From Epiperipatus broadwayi (taxonomy: Eukaryota > Animalia > Onychophora), in contig JAQFVV010000006.1 of assembly GCA_028023455.1 (NCBI GenBank), positions 2,356,001-2,420,000 on the forward strand: a stretch of 64,000 nt of DNA, given 5' to 3'. Positions 3,555 to 59,684 of this stretch are shown in pieces. Under the pieces are notes generated by a model. That model was not told the origin of the DNA and ran no database searches. It saw only the letters and a list, made by a program, of their open reading frames with translations. The position numbers and the translations under genes were made by a program. Numbering within the stretch: the stretch's first letter is position 1; each line of letters starts with the position of its first letter.

Positions 3555-3735
3555 GATCACGTGACCCTATCTCTTAAGCTTGTAAGTTATAAACAATGAG
3601 GATTGCCAATTCCTCTACAAGCTTTGTGATAAATGCTTAGTCAGAGCCAGCACTTAAAATATTTCTGTCAGGAACCCCTCCCAAAACCCCTGACCATGGT
3701 TTCATGCTTTGGCACTCCTCAGAGAGGTGTCAGGT
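3555..3735 (-). mobile_element. Short 5'-truncated hammerhead-bearing retroelement
   Basis: Flanked by near-TSD aaataagagtcata / aaataaaagtata; tail gatcacgtgaccctatctcttaagcttg resembles the tail of the 12 kb and 53 kb elements. Confidence 0.6.
3687..3727 (-). ncRNA. Minimal type I hammerhead ribozyme, apparently intact
   Basis: Minus strand: cctct CTGAGGA gtgc caaa gcat GAAA ccatgg TC agggg; stem I cctct/agggg, palindromic stem III ACCATGGT, GUC site. Confidence 0.85.
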
Positions 3736-11930: not shown

Positions 11931-12164
11931 AAAACAGAATGGTAGATTTAGTGATGTTTGTGAAGAGTTTGTAAGAAGTTTGTGTATTGAAAGTAGCAGC
12001 AGTGGAATATGTGTATTATCTCTGTTATATAATAACATTAGATATAAACATCACATGACCACCACCTCTTATGCTTGTGTATAACTTGTTAAAACAGGCA
12101 AAACTCACTATACGTATTGCAGGCTTGTGCATAAAATCCTCATCTAGGGCCTACTCATCCAATA

Positions 12165-12206
12165 TCCCCAGACTAGTTTCTGACTTGTGGCCTTCGTCAG
12201 TGAGGA
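12165..12206 (-). ncRNA. Minimal type I hammerhead ribozyme (left arm)
   Basis: Minus strand: tcctca CTGACGA a ggc cacaa gtc a GAAA ctag TC tgggga. Confidence 0.8.
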
Positions 12207-12243
12207 GCCTTGGATCTAGGTGCAGTGCTCTCAGATCCAAGGC

Positions 12244-12285
12244 TCCTCACTGACGAAGGCCACAAGCCAGAAACTAGTCTGGGGA
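12244..12285 (+). ncRNA. Minimal type I hammerhead ribozyme (right arm)
   Basis: tcctca CTGACGA a ggc cacaa gcc a GAAA ctag TC tgggga; 6-bp stem I, palindromic ACTAGT stem III, GUC site. Confidence 0.85.
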
Positions 12286-13470
12286 TATTGGCTGAGTAGG
12301 CACTAGATGGGGATTTTATGCACAAGCCTTCTGGCATCCATTGATTAGCTTGCTGTGTGTGGCAATACTTATAGTGAGTTTTGCCTGTTTTAACAACATT
12401 AGATATATTGAACTCTGGGAAGAGTTGATATATACTAAACAAGTTATCATATAACTTCTCCCCTGCTTAAATTGTAGCTTTTGCATGGATGTGTGCTATC
12501 ATTTCATGTCTCAATGGCACTAGAGTCTGATAAGTAGAGTGGATTATTGCTCCAATGCAAATAGGTCTAGTCGTAAACTATTTTGACAACAAATCAAAGG
12601 TGTCCATATTCAGCACATTGTTGAGGTTTTCTAATAAACTACATTGGGTAGAGATTGCATTGAGTACTAACTTCTGAGTCTAAATTAGCAAGCTGGATTG
12701 GATTTAAAAAATTGTAGAGTATTTCAGTTTTAGATTATATGAAAGAAATTAAATGGATTTTTATATAGCCAAAGCCTTTCGATATGTGTCATTAACAGGT
12801 ATGCCCACTATTGACTAGGGCATAAATGTCCTGGTTAATTAGGATTAATGTTGATGCATTAAGTCTAAATACAAAGAATACAATTGTAGTATAATGCAGT
12901 TTTATCAATTGTGTGGGAATGGCGAGAGGTGCCATTATTCTGCAAGCATTGAACTCATTATTTTTTTTTTCTGATTTTAAAATGGATAAAGTAAATATTT
13001 AGACCAAAAAGTCCTTTGAAACAAGTACATATTAAATTGTTGCTAATTTTCTTCTTTTTTGAGCCATTCTAATATCTGATAATTAATGAATATACTCACA
13101 AAAAAATGTAGTTTTTTAATATTTAACTTTATTACTGCCTAACATGCTTTCATTGTATTTACTATATCAAATTTGTGGCATATAAGTAGTGTGATTATAA
13201 ATAATTTATGAAAAAAATAAATATATGGATTCAAACAGTCTTTCTGTAGCCATAACATTGAAATTCAATAATAAAGTTATAACACGGTTTAGTACAATAG
13301 ATGATTAAAGACATCAAGGGTGAGAGGTTCCTAGACTGTAATTTAATCTTCAGCTTCTGGTACATGATTATAAGAAGGACAAATATTTCAATATCATTTT
13401 TTACCATTATTAAAAACAAAAAAATATATATGTAAACATCTTCATAAATACATAAGTGCCACTAAAGTAT

Positions 13471-13626
13471 GAGATCTGGCCACCAGATAGACACTCCAGT
13501 GATCAAAGACAAGACTACTCAATAAATAAAATGTACATTTTTCTAAGAGATCTGGTCACCAGATAGAGCTACACACCAGAAATCCAAGACAAGACTAATC
13601 AATAAATAAAATGTACATTTTTCTAA
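13471..13626 (+). repeat. Tandem pair of 76-80-bp units, each with an atctgg-nca-ccagat hairpin and an aataaa tail
   Basis: Two aligned units starting gagatctgg and ending aataaataaaatgtacatttttctaa. Confidence 0.8.
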
Positions 13627-15125
13627 TGCATAGAAATAATTTATTTAGAATCTTCAGTGATAAATGTAATTGATATAAATATGAAATTAATATCTTTAGC
13701 ATTGAATCTATTGAGAATGAATAATTCCTGTTTTTGTATTTTGTCTAGTAAATAAAAATGATTTTATTTAGAAAAAATATGAGCATGGCCATTCATAAGA
13801 AATTAATTGATGGTGATAAAGATATTGGCATTGATAAGAAATGCAATGCGAGCAAAAGGCTATACATGAAATGAAATTCTACTAGCGTTTTCTTTACGGC
13901 AAAGACCATATACAGTAAAACCATAAAATAAATGTTTTAGCAATGAATCCAAACGGAAATTCATACATTTTATTTGTTTTCTATTACATTTTTTTGTTCA
14001 TTACTATATAATATTTGGCTGTAGAAATGGTTTTACTGTTAACTGAAAGGTGTTTTTTAATTTCTCTTAGAAATTTTAAACCATGGTGGAAAGCTTTTTT
14101 TTTCTCCCAAGACCTTTTGAATATTTATATCATTCACAGGTCAAACAAAATTATCGAATTAAAATTTGACTGCTATATTTGATCAAAATTTAATTGATTT
14201 ATCTCAAATCATTGGGAGTGAATAATCTTTTCAACTTAAATCCAATTTCACTTTTAAATGAGGGCTACAATTCTTTTATAAGTTAAAGTAACATCATTAT
14301 TATTAATGACTGTTCCACATTTAATGACAACTTTTCCAATGCACAATGTAATTCTTCATATCATATTTATATTCTCCAATTTATTTTTATGCCCTGAATA
14401 GATTAATTCTACAGCAGTTAGGATACAGTTTTTATAAACTCTCCTTCAGAAAATGCATTCAAATTTTCTGCTTTGTTTTAAATGTAACTTGCTTTTCACA
14501 GAATTTTCTGTCTGGTTTGTTCTTTTTTATGTAACCTGACAGCCACGTGATGAAGCTTCTTTTCAAGTTTTCTACTTTAAGATTTTTTTTTCCCCAACAA
14601 TTTTATATATTGCCTCTTAATATCATGTTATTTTGCAACTGGAATATTTTTCAGTCATGTCAGACACATCATTTACTATTTCTTTCTATAAAAAGTTAAG
14701 CATCTATCTATTTCTTTTGAAATGCATGACTTTCTGTGTTAATTTTTCTAATCTTATTCGGTATAGCCATTCTAATAAAGAAAAGAGCAAAATAATAATA
14801 ATAAAACAAAGTAAAATTTTGGTTGCTAAAACTTATTGCTGTCTTGGCAGCATATTTTTTTTCCAACCTCTGTGCCACCTACTGTATGCTTTAGTAACTA
14901 ATAAATGTCAGAAAATAATGGTTAGTGACTTATGTGAGAGAATCATGTGACATTTTTTTGGTTTTATATTTAGGATAAAGATGCCTATGGTTGTTAAAAA
15001 ACTAATCACCCATTATACATATATATATGATCAATAGTTGGCGTTTTACCAAAAACACTGTCAAAGTGTAAGTTTGTTTACATAAATGTCAGAGTAAGCA
15101 TTCACTTTCTCTTTCATTAGTTCCA

Positions 15126-15170
15126 CCCTCAGATCATGATTTCAAGCTGATTTGCTATCATCAGTGAAGG
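15126..15170 (-). ncRNA. Minimal type I hammerhead ribozyme, monomer 1
   Basis: Minus strand: ccttca CTGATGA t agc aaatca gct t GAAA tcatga TC tgaggg. Confidence 0.85.
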
Positions 15171-15528
15171 ACAGGAATAAGAAACTAGATCTAAACACTA
15201 AACTCTGAGCATTTATGAAACAATTTCTATTCAGCTTGCAAGCGTGAATTTTTTAGACACATAATGTCTTCAAACTCAGCATAGCAAGCCAGATAGCTAT
15301 ATGGGTCTGATACCAGTTCAGTATCACCACATAGTAGAAGCCTCTGCAATATATATTATTGCAAGAAAACTTCAAAGGTACATTTATGAAAAACAAAAAA
15401 ACAAGTTAAACTTGCTAATGCTTGTATTTATGATCAATAGATGGCATTTTACCAAAAACACCGTCAAAGTGTAAGTTTGTTTACATGAATGTCAGAGTAA
15501 GCATTCACTACCTCTTTCATTAGTTCCA

Positions 15529-15573
15529 CTCTCAGATTATGATTTCAAGCTGATTTTCTATCATCAGTGAAGA
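15529..15573 (-). ncRNA. Hammerhead ribozyme, monomer 2, stems decayed
   Basis: Minus strand: tcttca CTGATGA taga aaatca gctt GAAA tcataa TC tgagag; core intact, mismatches in stems I-III. Confidence 0.65.
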
Positions 15574-16093
15574 ACAGGAATAAGAAACTAGATCTAAACA
15601 CTTAACTCTGAGCATTTATGAAACAATTTCTATTCAGCTTGCAAGCGTGAATTTTTTAGACACGTAATGTCTTCAAACTCAGCATAGCAAACCAGATAGC
15701 TACATGGGTCTGATCTCAGTTCAGCATCACCACATAGTAGAAGCCTCTGCAATATATATGATTGCAAGAAAACTTCAAAGATACATTTATGAAAAACAAA
15801 AAAACAAGTTAAACTTGCTAACGCTTGTATTTATGATCAATAGATGGTGTTTTACCAAAAACACCGTCAAAGCGTAAGTTTGTTTATATAAACGTTTTCT
15901 TGCAATGATATATGTTGCAGAGGCTTCTACTATGTGGTGATTCTCAACTGATATCAGACCCGTATAGCTATCTGGCTTGCTATGCTGAGTTTGAAGACAT
16001 TATGTGTCTAAAAAATTCATGCTTGCAAGCTGAATAGAAATTGTTTCATAAATGCTCAGAGTTTAGTGTTTAGATCTAGTTTCTTATTCCTGT

Positions 16094-16138
16094 CCTTCAC
16101 TGATGATAGCAAATCAGCTTGAAATCATGATCTGAGGG
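16094..16138 (+). ncRNA. Minimal type I hammerhead ribozyme, inverted monomer
   Basis: ccttca CTGATGA t agc aaatca gct t GAAA tcatga TC tgaggg; palindromic ATCATGAT stem III, AUC site. Confidence 0.85.
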
Positions 16139-16717
16139 TGGAACTAACGAAAGAGGTAGTGAATGCTTACTCTGACGTTTATGTAAACAAACTTACGCTT
16201 TGACAGTGTTTTTGGTAAAACGCCACCTATTGATCATAAATACAAGTATTAGCAAGTTTAACTTGTTTTTTTGTTTTTCATATATATATATTGTGCAGTT
16301 TTCAGATCTATTTGATTGTGCAAGAAAGTTAGCTTAGATTGGAAATATTTATATTTTTTCCAATTTGGGATATTTTGATCCTTTAAAAAGAGATTTTAGC
16401 TATCTTTGCAGAAAGGAATATGCATTAGATCTAAAGTTACAGGCTGTGTTCCAAGATCCAAAGCTTCTCTTTAATGAAAGTCATAAGCCTGAAACTAGTC
16501 TGTGGATACATGATAGAGTTTGTTGAGCACTATTATCTCGCATATCTATTAGTTATTAAAGCTTACCATAGATTGCATAATGATATGAAGGGAGACATAT
16601 GCTGTTGAAGATGAAAATTACTAATAATTTTAATATTTGTGTATATAAATATTGGTTACTAAATATGTAGTGTTGTTTATGGAGAAGCAAACTTCAAATA
16701 TGTATACCATATTAATG

Positions 16718-42508: not shown

Positions 42509-43240
42509 ATGCAATCAATAATATCCGAGTTTGACATCAGAGAGGCAAACGAGTGTCCCCTGTACGTTCAACAGATTGAAAATTACTGTTTTATTAACAG
42601 ATAGAGGAAGATGCGTATAAAACAGCGACATTATTATGTTTTGCATGAAAAGGGGTCATACAAATAGCTAACAGATTAGCAGAACCCAACACTCCTGAAA
42701 AATTAACCTACAATGAGTTAAAAGATCTTTTGTCAAATTATTTTAATCCTCGCCCGTCTAGGCACATCGCCAGACTTCATTTTCGAAATCGCCATCAAGG
42801 CAGAAACGAAAATACGCAGGATTACGACTCAGCCCTATGCGAACTCGCAAAAAACTGCTGTTATGATTCATATTTAGAAGAAGCGCTACTGGAACAATTC
42901 CTATGTGGAATGAATAGCAACAGTTTGAGGCAGCAGTTACTGGCTGATAAAGACATAAATTATCATGAAGCTATCAAACGCAGTATCGCTCACGAAATAG
43001 TGGTGGAGCAAGCAAAAGAATTTGCTTTGAAAAAAGGCATTGATAGTGATCAAACAGGAATATTTGGTGTTGAAAAACTCAACAAAGGGTCTTCCGATAA
43101 CAAAACTATTAAACAGACAAATAAAAGTCAGACAGTGCTATTGTTGCGGAAAACTAGGTCATATAGCTAAAGATTGCTATTTCAAACACGATCGATGTAG
43201 ACTGTGTAAAAAATAGGTCACATGGTGAGAATGTGTGAAA
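42509..43240 (+). pseudogene. gag: gag pseudogene with two CCHC zinc knuckles
   Basis: MQSIISEFD...LTYNELKDLLSNYFNP...; CYCCGKLGHIAKDC and CRLCKKIGHMVRMC from 43136; stop and frameshifts. Confidence 0.9.
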
Positions 43241-43341
43241 ATAGAACAGTTGACCAAGTTAAAGGAAATAATATACAAAGTATAAATAATACCAAATGTA
43301 ATATTGTTATAGATAACACGGTTATAAATCAAGCACAGAAA

Positions 43342-46300
43342 TTTATGACTACTGTGAAAGTTTACGGAAAACCCCTGTCGATGGAAATAGACAGCGGTAG
43401 CGGCATTTCTTTAATATCCGTAACCGACTGGAATTCGATCAGAGCGGAAATAAGAGAGCCCCCTAGGCTTAGCAATACTAAGCTTAGAGCATCGGATGTA
43501 AATGGTAAAGAAATCAAAATTAAGGGTGTAGTCCAAGCCCAAATTACGAGTAGTAAAGGCAACATTTCAATCTTGCCGCTATATATTGTACACGCCCCCA
43601 TAAACCCTCTCATTGGTCGGGACTGGTTTACAGAGCTCGGAATTGAAATTTCATTGGTCAAAAAAATTGACCATGAAAAAGACAAGAGATCGTTTCCCTA
43701 AACTTTTTAATGGCAAACCAGGAACGATTAAAACTAAACCTGTGTCACTGGAAATGTCACCAGAGGCCGTGCCAATAATTTGCAGACCTTGGAAGGTCCC
43801 CTTCGCACAGAAAGAAAAAGTAGCAAAAGAGATAAATGAGTTAGTGAAGAACGGCATTCTAGAACCGACAGAGGAGACAGAGTGGGCGACTCTGCTGGTC
43901 GTTATCACCAAACCTAACGGACAGATATGCTTGTGCGGCGATTATCGCATAACTGTCAACAAATCTCTAAATAAACATCCCTACCCCGTTCCAAACTCCA
44001 GAGAAATATTAGCATCACTGCAAAAATCAAAATATTTTGCTAAATTAGATTTAGATGCGGCCTTCCATCAAATTCCAGTAACAAATAAGGCTGCTGAAAT
44101 TCTAACACTGACTACTCATGTGGGTCTATTCAAATGCAAACGCCTCCCATTTGGCATAGCGTCCATTCCCAGTATATTCCAAGCAAAAATTGAAACTCTG
44201 CTTACTGGATGCGAGGGCGTTATCCCTTATTTTGATGACATATTAATTACTGAAGATCAGAAAATGAATTGCATTGTCGTCTAACTACTGTCTGTCAAAG
44301 GCTAGAAGAGTTTGGAGCGAAATTAAACACTGAAAAATGTATATGGAAGGCCACTGAATTAAAGTTTTTAGGGCACATAGTCTCTAAGTCTGGGACAAGG
44401 CCATCCCCCAAAAAGGTCAAAGCAGTGTCAGAAGCTAGAAAGCCTAGTAACATAAAACAATTGCAGGCTTTTTTGGGTTTGGTAAACTATTTTGAGAACT
44501 TCCTAGAGGGCAAAGCTCGCATAGCCAAACCATTATACGAGCTACTGAAAAAGAATCGGAAATGGAAATGGGAAGCAACACAAGAAAGGGCTTTTCAAAA
44601 TACCAAAGCTTTACTTGTATCAAACAAATTACTGATACACTATGATAGCGATCTTGAAATAACACTAACGACTGATGCATCAGAATATGGAGTGGGGGCA
44701 GTAATATGTCACCCAGCTCAATCTGGGGAACGTCCCATAGCATATGCGTCATGCACTTTGTCCAAAGCTGAAAAAATTATAGTCAGGTGGATAAGGAAGC
44801 GCTAGCTATAGTATTTGGAATTCGTAAATTCCACCATTATCTATACGGTCGTTATTTCAAAATCATGACAGACCACAAACCACTTCTGGGAATTTTAGGC
44901 ATCAAACAAATTCTGGAACACCTCAGCCCGCGCATGTTGAGATGGATTAACATACTTGCTGGGTATGATTACAGTCTGGAATATAGAAAGGGAAAGAATA
45001 TTGGTCACGCCGATGCATTATCCCGAATGCCTGACAACTCAGAGAATACAACAAGCGAAATAGAAATCAATTATATTGATGCGCTTCAAAGCCAGACTCT
45101 TAATAGCCGAAAAGTAGCAGCATGGACTAATGAAGATGCTGGCTACAAATGGCTGATGGAAAAAATTGGAAGAGGCTGGCCAGCACAGCGTCCTCCGTTT
45201 TTGCACATAGAGCTATGGAAAGCTCGCGAAAAATTATCAATATGTAAAGGTTGCATTCTTAAAGGCGATCAGGTCCTAATACCAAAAATAGGTAGATCAC
45301 ACATACTAAATTTATTACATGAAGGTCATCCAGGCAGTCAGGGCAAAAGCGTTAGCCCATAGTTATGTATGGTGGCCAAGAATCAGCACTGAGATAGAAA
45401 CATTCATAAAAAAATGTTCTAGCTGTCAGTCATGTGCAAAAGCGCCCCAGCGAAATATGAAGCTTGGAAAGAAGCAGAGAAACCTTGGCAGAAAATTTAC
45501 ATTGACCACTGCGGTCCAATCCACGGACAATTATTTCGGGTAGTGGTTGATGCCTACTCAGGATGGTCAGAATTTAAACCAGTGAAAAACACAAGTTCGG
45601 ATGAGATGCTGGACAAGCTCATGGAAATTTTTTCATACCACGGGCTACTGGAAACCCTCGTATCTGATAATGGAACCAGTTTCACGTCTGAAAAATTTGC
45701 CGAATTTATGCAGGAATGGGGGATTAAACACATCCTTACCCCCCCCACCCCTAATAAAATGGACTGGCTGAGAAAGCGGTACAAAGCTTAAAGTCATCAA
45801 TGAATAAATTGGGAAAAGGAAGACTCCAAGAGGCAGTTTTCATGGCGTTGCTATATCAGCATTCCACACCCACATCTAAAACGGGCAGATCACCTGCAGA
45901 AAAATACTTAGGCCGGAAATTACGTACAAAGCTCTCAGCAATAAGGCCATCAAAAGAGCATCAAATGCCAATTACGACAAATAACAAATTTTCACCTGAT
46001 GAACGAGTCTGCGTGAAAAATAATTTAAATAAATCATGGACTCAGGCATACGTGGTACGCCATTTAAGTAAACAAATGGTTGCTGTCCATATGGCAGATG
46101 GCAAACAATTGCGTAAGCACATTAACCAATTGCGCAAGAGTGCAACAACAGAATTCTGTACTCCACAATTGTTTAAAAGTAATGACAAAGAAAATGATAC
46201 TCACTATGAAACTAAAAGTGAAACAGAAATCATTACTGCTGACGAAGAAAGTCAAAATAGTGAAGAAAATGAAATAGTCACAGTTGGTGAAATTAAATCA

Positions 46301-46378
46301 CCCCCACGCGCAAAGAGGAGAACAAAAATTCCCCTCCGCCTGCACGATTATGTGCTAAGTTCAGAGAAGAAGAAATGA
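43342..46378 (+). pseudogene. pol: pol pseudogene (protease, RT, RNase H, integrase)
   Basis: IDSGS, RLCGDY-like, KLDL..AFHQI, YFDD, TDASEYG, WWP..C..C, VDAYS, SDNG motifs split over six ORFs. Confidence 0.95.
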
Positions 46379-54694: not shown

Positions 54695-55094
54695 ATTTTT
54701 TTAAATGCTTCTTTCATAAACAAAATAATATTGGAATTGATTTTTTAATACACATTTTTTTTTTTCCAAATGTTGTGCAGACTGCAACATATCTTATAAT
54801 CTATACTTTAATTTTGAATTGGAAAAATAACAAAAAATATCCTGAAAACTATACCGATTTGGTATTGTGGTATTAGAGCTGCGACATGAAGAATTATAAT
54901 CGTTTAATCATTAAATTAATTAGGTTATTAAATCAAAAACATATTTTAAAATATACATTTAAAAAAAAAAAACAATTTAACAAAAAAAAAATACGAAAAG
55001 CATTAATGTGAAGAATAGTTAAAATGCGTGTTTAAATCAAATTGAGTGTGTGTTTGCACGTGCATATTCTGCATAATCTATTTTAATACATTGT

Positions 55095-57427: not shown

Positions 57428-57465
57428 CCTTACAGTTTCACCTGTCCAGCAGTCTTCATCAGAGC
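57428..57465 (-). ncRNA. Degenerate minimal type I hammerhead (related to 287 and 11813)
   Basis: Minus strand: gct CTGATGA a gactg ctgga caggt GAAA ctg TA agg, followed by aataaa. Confidence 0.55.
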
Positions 57466-58631: not shown

Positions 58632-59684
58632 GTGGCAACATTCAATAATCAATGTTACCAAATGAACGATGGATGGCCGATGGGATTACCCATGAGTGGT
58701 ATCATCTCAAGTATCATACTTAATTATTTTGAAAAAAGTATTATTCCTAAATACGAACAAACACTTAAGTTAATTGTATACACAAGATACGTTGATGACC
58801 TTTTCATCGCTGCTACTGAAGAAATTATAGATAAAATTAAACAGGACATACAAGACAGTACGCAGCTGAAGCTAAACATAGAAATGGAAGATCGTGAAGG
58901 GAAAACTAAATACTTGGATATGTATGTGCAAAGAGAAGATCAAAGACTAAATTATACAATGATTATAAAACCAATAGAAAAAAGAGGCAATATTCAACCT
59001 TCTTCAAACACGCCTTCTATTCATAAATTAGCTGGTTTAGCGTCTTTCTTGCATAGGAATGAGCAACTTTGCAGATTTGAATCGGACAAAAGAGCAAACT
59101 TAATCTTATATGGAAACGATTTATTAGATTTCGGCTTCAAGCATTACACAATTGATAGGAAGATTAGACAATTTTACAGTAAATTAAACAGCAATGTTAT
59201 TAAGCAGCAGAAAAATAGAATTTTGTTACCATATATTGCAACTACCCATAGAAAGTTTTACTCAGTGTTTAATAAAGAATTTCAACTAAGCTTTCATACA
59301 CCCCCTAATACAAATAGAATTATTAATAACACCAAAGACATTATAACACCCAACAACACCTCTCAGGCCGTATATATTTCATGTCCAGAAAATAACTGCA
59401 TGGCATCATACTATGGGGAAACGAAAGCAACTCTTTCTACAAGACTATCCCAGCACAGATATTCTTACAATAAGGCCCAAGTAGACCCAAATTGCAACTC
59501 AATATTTGCAATACATCAGAAATCAGCTGGTCATGCATGTGAACCTAAAAATGCAAGAATAGTTTGCAGGGAGAGAAATGACATTAAGAGAAAAGTTAAA
59601 GAAGCATGTTTTATTGCTATTGATGATAAGGCTATGAATAGGAAAGATGCGTGTTACAAAATCTCTAAGAAATGGATCATTTAG
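58632..59684 (+). CDS. 5'-truncated Penelope-like RT plus GIY-YIG endonuclease (350 aa, stop-free)
   Basis: GWPMGLPMSG, YTRYVDDLF, KYLD, AVYISC...C..YYGET, RLSQH, H....H, KVKEACFI motifs. Confidence 0.95.
   Translation: MATFNNQCYQMNDGWPMGLPMSGIISSIILNYFEKSIIPKYEQTLKLIVYTRYVDDLFIAATEEIIDKIKQDIQDSTQLKLNIEMEDREGKTKYLDMYVQREDQRLNYTMIIKPIEKRGNIQPSSNTPSIHKLAGLASFLHRNEQLCRFESDKRANLILYGNDLLDFGFKHYTIDRKIRQFYSKLNSNVIKQQKNRILLPYIATTHRKFYSVFNKEFQLSFHTPPNTNRIINNTKDIITPNNTSQAVYISCPENNCMASYYGETKATLSTRLSQHRYSYNKAQVDPNCNSIFAIHQKSAGHACEPKNARIVCRERNDIKRKVKEACFIAIDDKAMNRKDACYKISKKWII

Follow-up and report, generated by a model that had tools for sequence, protein, structure and literature searches.

We analysed an element at positions 15027–16282 of a 64,000-nucleotide stretch of the onychophoran Epiperipatus broadwayi (contig JAQFVV010000006.1, positions 2,356,001 to 2,420,000; hereafter the window). 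The element is a 1,256-bp insertion in which a short head-to-tail array of a 403-bp non-coding unit, with a hammerhead ribozyme motif in each full copy, is fused to an inverted and circularly permuted copy of the same unit. The initial annotation of this DNA had described such a structure, and the alignment and the motif search bore it out. The element is probably one old insertion of a non-autonomous retrozyme of the type without long terminal repeats (LTRs), which depended on a Penelope-like element (PLE) and was reverse transcribed by priming from both target strands. It cleanly exemplifies a kind of animal mobile element that is already known, rather than a new one; the retrozyme class, its link to PLEs, and the PLE footprint and mechanism have all been published.

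Tandem Repeats Finder gave a period of 403 bp with 2.2 copies, 94% matches, and 0% indels at 15022–15892, and a repeat search gave start-to-start spacings of 403/403 within the array. These results confirm the 403-bp period and the short head-to-tail array that had been annotated. The array (arm A, 15027–15895, 869 bp) has its ribozyme sense on the minus strand and consists of monomer 1 (15027–15429, 403 nt), monomer 2 (15430–15832, 403 nt, the most diverged copy in the alignment), and a 63-bp partial third monomer (15833–15895). The latter is the 5′-truncated inner end of arm A and halts 42–43 nt short of the next cleavage site. The GC content of the unit is 34%. The longest open reading frame (ORF) overlapping the element encodes 57 amino acids, in agreement with the earlier statement that the array holds no ORF. 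The flanks are unique, and the element contains only about three units.

The inverted copy (arm B, 15894–16282, plus strand, 389 nt) runs through monomer positions 60–403 and then 1–45, and is about 14–16 nt short of a full unit. As annotated, it crosses the monomer junction, but its overrun past the array start measures 45 nt (16238–16282, plus strand) and not 47 nt. This part of arm B beyond the end point of arm A forms a one-sided “tail” and includes a small stem-loop. The repeat search paired the inverted arms over 395 nt (94% complementarity) and over 356 nt (96%), and a four-way alignment showed zero internal gaps across the four pieces. The ribozyme-sense 3′ ends of both arms face outward, and the 5′ ends meet at a central head-to-head joint where GT (15894–15895) fits both arms, giving 2 nt of microhomology. 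Arm A ends 105 nt and arm B 150 nt downstream of the predicted cleavage site, 45 nt apart. These outer ends are the putative start “site 1” and “site 2”, respectively, of reverse transcription. Both arm ends read ...UCAU in the ribozyme sense; the outer termini are otherwise different, with only ATGA in common.

The element lies with sharp ends in a short (TA)n tract, and (AT)n runs read from the sequence flank it on the left (15019–15026) and on the right (16283–16291). These flanks of 8–10 bp are compatible with a target-site duplication (TSD), of which the two runs are the candidate partners. The boundary of the element is ambiguous by 2–4 nt, its end ...CAT overlapping the AT repeat. The AT run is placed outside the unit because the sequence upstream of ATGATC is different at the monomer–monomer junction. 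An imperfect 24-bp direct repeat (83% matches) was also observed at 16275–16322, across the right end of the element and its flank, where the tail end TTTTCAT followed by (AT)n and TGTGCAG resembles the next 24 nt of the flank. This repeat may have arisen by chance in a T-rich sequence, or may reflect microhomology of the tail with the target.

The inverted arms, which are 94–96% complementary, and the short AT-rich flanking repeats give the locus a superficial likeness to foldback elements. An origin at the DNA level was considered, through a Foldback-like or miniature inverted-repeat transposon or through duplication-inversion by replication template switching, with the hammerhead incidental. 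However, the outer termini differ and are offset by 45 nt, which leaves no matched terminal inverted repeats for a transposase, and the arms are unequal (869 vs 389 bp) and broken at unrelated monomer positions. Moreover, the hammerhead motif described below is far from chance, and the layout is that published for PLE retrotransposition (PMC8557442, PMC11167929). We regard a DNA-level origin as very unlikely, and a foldback DNA transposon in particular was rejected on its differing outer termini.

A 39-nt core pattern of the hammerhead occurred 3 times in the window and 0 times in 100 shuffles. It matched exactly at 15164–15126 (minus) and 16100–16138 (plus), and with 3 mismatches at 15567–15529 (minus). 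The annotated count of one hammerhead per monomer holds, but the middle copy carries mutations in each of its three helices (I, II, and III). The intact 45-nt type I motif of monomer 1 (15126–15170, minus; predicted cut between 15132 and 15131) is identical to the intact motif of arm B (16094–16138, plus; predicted cut between 16132 and 16133). The order of parts is helix I, CUGAUGA, helix II, GAAA, helix III, AUC, and the second strand of helix I. The full conserved core (C3 U4 G5 A6 N7 G8 A9 and G12 A13 A14), the A15.1–U16.1 pair, and H17 at the cut are present in both intact copies. In the third copy (15529–15573, minus), the core is intact and four substitutions fall in helix I (on both strands), in helix II, and in the palindrome of helix III.

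Helix I has 6 bp and 4 more beyond an internal loop and is open, helix II has a U·U followed by 3 bp and a 6-nt loop, and helix III has 2 bp and a palindromic CAUG loop. These helix and loop lengths match the 45-nt Rfam hammerhead consensus. The canonical metazoan type I design has a helix I of 6 bp, a helix II of 4 positions, and a helix III of 1–2 bp with a palindromic loop; the motif has this same published architecture. The G10.1–C11.1 pair at the base of helix II is replaced by U·U, which has a precedent in the active axolotl hammerhead HHR_Amex2 (PMC7229834). HHR_Amex2 and newt satellite-2 also share a helix III of 1–2 bp with a palindromic tetraloop, and poor monomer cleavage with rescue in dimers is expected for them as for the motif described here (PMC7229834). 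In contrast, their loop and helix sequences differ from ours, in which the tertiary loop contacts are unrecognisable.

A structural descriptor was written for this motif, and its expectation was obtained from a first-order Markov simulation of 64 kb. The descriptor gave five matches in the window, namely the two intact copies and three motifs of two other families, against an expectation of 0.007 matches per simulated 64 kb; the motif is therefore not a chance string, and that candidate was rejected. Exact-pattern scans of metagenome and viral collections found no copy of the ribozyme. The descriptor result also bears on the proposal that the locus is a short satellite of the ordinary type, or an artefact of assembly, in which a hammerhead-like string occurs by chance. 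The lack of an Rfam hammerhead match (see below) and the difficulty of assembling repeats of this kind (PMC8557442) are consistent with that proposal. However, two identical intact motifs stand at the same unit position, the flanks are unique around only about three units, and four DNA sequencing runs, which may derive from the assembly's own sample, contain 0.65–0.72 of the sampled words of the element. We consider this explanation highly improbable, the least credible of those weighed here.

Published PLE insertions consist of a partial head-to-tail tandem with an adjacent inverted 5′-truncated copy, carry a 30–40-bp tail at one end only, and are biased toward (TA)n or AT-rich targets (PMC8557442). 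The insertion at 15027–16282 likewise combines a partial tandem with an inverted 5′-truncated copy, has a 45-nt extension on arm B alone, and is bordered by (AT)n on both flanks. We infer the involvement of a PLE and the two priming sites from this layout. A PLE protein studied in vitro cuts AT-rich DNA on both strands and extends each of them; its reverse transcription begins at two neighbouring sites within the RNA, and the interval between these sites is the tail (PMC11167929). The hammerhead cut of that PLE lies 26 nt and its reverse transcription start 111–118 nt into the ORF, 85–92 nt apart (PMC11167929). The geometry of our element (105 nt, then the 45-nt tail) is, by analogy, close to these 85–92 nt.

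The element thus resembles PLEs (PMC8557442, PMC11167929) in its tandem with an inverted truncated copy, one-end tail, and AT-rich/(TA)n target, and in a hammerhead lying approximately 100 nt upstream of the putative reverse transcription start. It differs from them in the absence of an ORF for a reverse transcriptase/GIY-YIG protein, in its 403-bp unit (vs 3–4 kb), in its longer tail, and in a canonical type I hammerhead instead of the minimal PLE variant. The non-autonomous PLE derivatives of Chlamys, such as MRC1 (PMC8557442), are also ORF-less and PLE-dependent, possess pseudo-LTRs (pLTRs), and form multicopy head-to-tail insertions. In contrast to our element, they are algal, mostly carry no canonical hammerhead, and share their 3′ ends with known autonomous partners.

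An inversion of this general form is also known from L1. In L1 twin priming, as Ostertag and Kazazian are said to have described it in 2001, the second primer anneals within a single linear RNA, through homology that arises by chance. The resulting inversions reportedly share with our element two cDNAs from two target strands, a join at microhomology, and outward RNA 3′ ends. They differ in that both arms described here begin at internal sites that are defined, as is typical of PLEs, and derive from a repetitive template.

These likenesses to PLEs raise the question of whether the unit is only the pLTR or 3′ module of an ORF-bearing PLE elsewhere in the genome, inserted as a severely 5′-truncated tandem. 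PLE insertions are highly 5′-truncated and carry hammerheads in their pLTRs (PMC8557442), the consensus sequences of Xenopus retrozymes match PLE termini, and the distance from ribozyme to reverse transcription start resembles that of a real PLE (PMC11167929). However, the period of 403 bp holds exactly beyond two units, and no ORF separates the ribozymes, whereas a partial tandem of an autonomous PLE would be expected to repeat at the length of the whole element. In addition, the unit has no similarity to the PLE remnants of the window beyond T-rich low complexity: its single blastn match in the PLE region (54946–54980) is of that kind, and in the comparison with these remnants it showed no sequence in common with an autonomous PLE at the pLTR or 3′ end. 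We judge this explanation improbable.

In regards to the retrozyme class, the metazoan non-LTR retrozymes are short, low-GC, non-coding tandem units with one type I hammerhead each (PMC7229834). Their units measure approximately 150–450 bp, have no LTR, primer-binding site (PBS), or polypurine tract (PPT), and have a GC content below 50% (PMC7229834). The DNA examined here has tandem units of 403 bp that are non-coding, carry a type I hammerhead, contain no LTR, PBS, or PPT, and have the low GC content given above. The initial annotation had placed 403 nt at the upper end of the size range of metazoan retrozyme circular RNAs; a unit of this length is unremarkable, as published units reach 972 bp. 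In common with the metazoan retrozymes (PMC7229834, PMC7761336) are the short low-GC non-coding units, the single hammerhead, the self-paired predicted circle, the co-residence with PLEs, and a unit size near that of the mussel repeats (350–390 bp). The differences are that the present family is known from DNA alone, that its unit sequence is unrelated to those compared, and that a head-to-head arm with a one-sided tail is not described in PMC7229834 or PMC7761336. In a 2026 retrozyme preprint, the word “tail” is absent and “inverted” occurs in the reference list only.

Several observations weigh against a PLE-dependent retrozyme insertion. The catalytic secondary structure of the ribozyme is predicted at −6.0 kcal/mol, compared with −16.0 kcal/mol for an alternative fold that buries the core. 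No Rfam hammerhead match was obtained at the gathering threshold or at E≤10 (searches of 1.7 kb and of 91 nt). The gathering score of Hammerhead_1 (RF00163) is 34 bits, and the control motif at 3686–3728 (minus) scores 29.5 bits. The sole Rfam matches were spurious microRNA and small nucleolar RNA matches, which arose from the foldback and the UGAUGA string. Blastn of the unit over the 64-kb window revealed no further copy of the family, which has one locus in it, and no PLE that shares its sequence. The target is a microsatellite, so that the TSD of approximately 8–10 bp stays a candidate, and the 45-nt tail is slightly longer than the published 30–40. Finally, small sequencing runs guessed to be RNA contain only 0.18–0.20 of the sampled words of the element, a share that, with the run type being a guess, is approximately the expectation for a family RNA of about 95% identity.

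The catalytic secondary structure of the mutated middle motif was predicted at +5.3 kcal/mol and is no longer favourable, and the motif of the middle unit is predicted to be dead. Two copies of the segment co-fold in prediction through the 8-nt palindrome AUCAUGAU, which yields a double hammerhead whose extended helix III pairs the two molecules over 8 bp. The folding models suggest that a single motif is probably weak or inactive, and that cleavage, if any, would occur as a dimer or with the help of protein. Both dimer rescue and protein help are documented in related ribozymes (PMC7229834, PMC11167929). The circle of the unit in the ribozyme sense folds at −116.6 kcal/mol, compared with −81.5±4.7 kcal/mol for dinucleotide shuffles (z = −7.5), and is predicted to be highly self-paired, as retrozyme circles are. 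The antisense circle gave z = −3.8. Helix I forms in the ribozyme-sense circle fold, at the end of a long paired stem. This predicted strand asymmetry of folding fits an RNA whose structure matters, as in retrozyme circles.

The insertion is best explained by the following course of events. The reverse transcriptase/GIY-YIG endonuclease of a PLE would cut a short (AT)n tract on both of its strands. Primed by each free 3′ end, reverse transcription of the ribozyme-sense RNA would begin at one of two start sites within it, which lie 105 and 150 nt downstream of the point where the ribozyme cleaves and are separated by 45 nt. One cDNA would run for 2.15 units and the other for 0.96 unit. Joining of their inner ends at the 2-nt microhomology would yield the head-to-head arms, the outward RNA 3′ ends, and the one-sided tail. 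Subsequent decay of approximately 1–4% per copy would have destroyed one ribozyme. In the published retrozyme model, circles are copied into tandem cDNA by target priming (PMC7229834). According to the 2020 review, no motif in the repeats reveals which element mobilises them (PMC7761336).

All three passes over the ribozyme site were read through, and the template was therefore either uncleaved or religated. We lean slightly toward an unprocessed multimeric transcript, or template jumping, as the template over a circle. The second possibility is a 403-nt circular RNA, formed by hammerhead cleavage and ligation and rounded more than twice, with the second arm copied from the other target strand. 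Metazoan retrozyme RNAs are mostly circular and abundant, amounting to 0.1–1% of total RNA (PMC7229834), and both arms cross the cleavage site without stopping. However, full-length PLEs and their hammerhead-less non-autonomous derivatives also insert as multicopy tandems, with no circles known for them (PMC8557442), and ribozyme-dead templates insert equally well in vitro, where unprocessed RNA is the main substrate (PMC11167929). Because the monomeric ribozyme is predicted to be weak, multimers should persist.

The divergence among the copies bears on the same choice. Pairwise differences, private variants included, were 3.8–6.4%; the copies are hence distinct DNA, and an assembly duplication was rejected. 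A star tree fits the three copies; its branches, of 5, 15, and 10 differences, are not significantly unequal (p = 0.08), which is what copies identical at insertion, such as those from a circle, would give. On the other side, three columns carry three different letters where 0.75 is expected (p = 0.04), and monomer 2 holds 9 of the 16 private non-CpG changes (p = 0.05). Both results hint weakly at units that already differed when they were inserted. On this evidence, a circular template is quite conceivable, though we place it somewhat below an even chance. The initial annotation had claimed reverse transcription around a circle followed by a PLE-type inversion. The footprint part of this claim was supported; the circle part was not, as nothing in the DNA separates a circle from the copying of an uncleaved multimer. 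We hold only tentatively, and as rather doubtful in its complete form, that the locus records two-strand-primed Penelope-type reverse transcription on retrozyme RNA, with the arm ends marking the two start sites and a 403-nt circle rounded more than twice. The order of modules would then, by analogy, be as in the one PLE studied in vitro.

The 30 variable columns comprise 11 CpG transitions, 11 other transitions, and 8 transversions or multi-state columns, and at one CpG, decay has produced TG in one copy but CA in another. The copy differences had been ascribed to post-insertion CpG decay, which accounts for 11 of the 30 columns and not for the remainder. Each copy retains 2–5 CpGs (observed/expected ratio of 0.18–0.43; window ratio, 0.46). 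Between approximately 45% and 78% of nine inferred ancestral CpGs have been lost, compared with approximately 1.6% non-CpG divergence per copy. This high loss suggests heavy methylation of the repeat or some pre-insertion polymorphism at those sites.

The main grounds for inferring which enzyme mobilises retrozymes have so far been their co-occurrence with PLEs, joined recently by similarity to frog pLTRs. If the pattern described here were true across the family, it would provide insertion-footprint evidence that PLE enzymes mobilise animal retrozymes and would locate the entry site of the enzyme on the retrozyme RNA. The combination of tail, twin arms, and AT-rich target would offer a test of the retrozyme–PLE link from sequence alone and would map the reverse transcription start sites. 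The footprint argument may be a small addition for retrozymes and needs a whole family rather than one locus; a single locus, well preserved but old, is of modest value. If the element were transcribed through, its head-to-head arms could give a double-stranded RNA of approximately 390 bp, which might feed small-RNA silencing of the family.

Sequencing runs labelled as other organisms contain 0.05–0.20 of the 31-letter words of the element. The family, or part of it, is therefore common to relatives.

An unrelated hammerhead family is found at 12030–12407 (head-to-head layout at 12047–12390) as a near-perfect head-to-head palindrome, in which the arms lie at 12086–12224 and 12226–12396 and the right one contains an insertion of 32 nt. 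Its TSD measures 17 bp (16/17 identical), and only its left side bears a tail, which is 39 nt long. The ribozymes, at 12200 (minus) and 12250 (plus), have a 1-bp helix III, a CUAG loop, and A·A at the base of helix II. The symmetric centre, with a 1-nt spacer, looks like snap-back more than two independent cDNAs. The layout appears to repeat the pattern of 15027–16282 and was counted in favour of a PLE-type insertion. A type I hammerhead of a third family, the control motif at 3686–3728 (minus), reaches its score against Hammerhead_1 with E = 6.5e-06 on 121 nt, and its helix III is closed by the palindrome CCAUGG.

CUGA[A/U]GA...GAAAC strings with a longer helix II were found at 320 (minus), 5597 (plus), 21217 (plus), and 57462 (minus), and look like minimal PLE-type hammerheads. 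The string at 57462 adjoins the PLE-type ORF of the window. This ORF, of 350 amino acids at 58632–59684 (plus), has a weak RVT_1 match; its nearest protein-atlas clusters contain HTH_animal, RVT_1, and GIY-YIG, and it resembles protein clusters of arthropods, cnidarians, and molluscs. This ORF looks like a remnant of a PLE and was counted in favour of PLE involvement. A chain of frame-shifted ORFs at 43222–46378 (plus) with aspartyl protease, reverse transcriptase, and RNase H is a decayed Gypsy-like LTR retrotransposon, and an 80-bp tandem repeat (2 copies, 87% matches) is located at 13471–13626.

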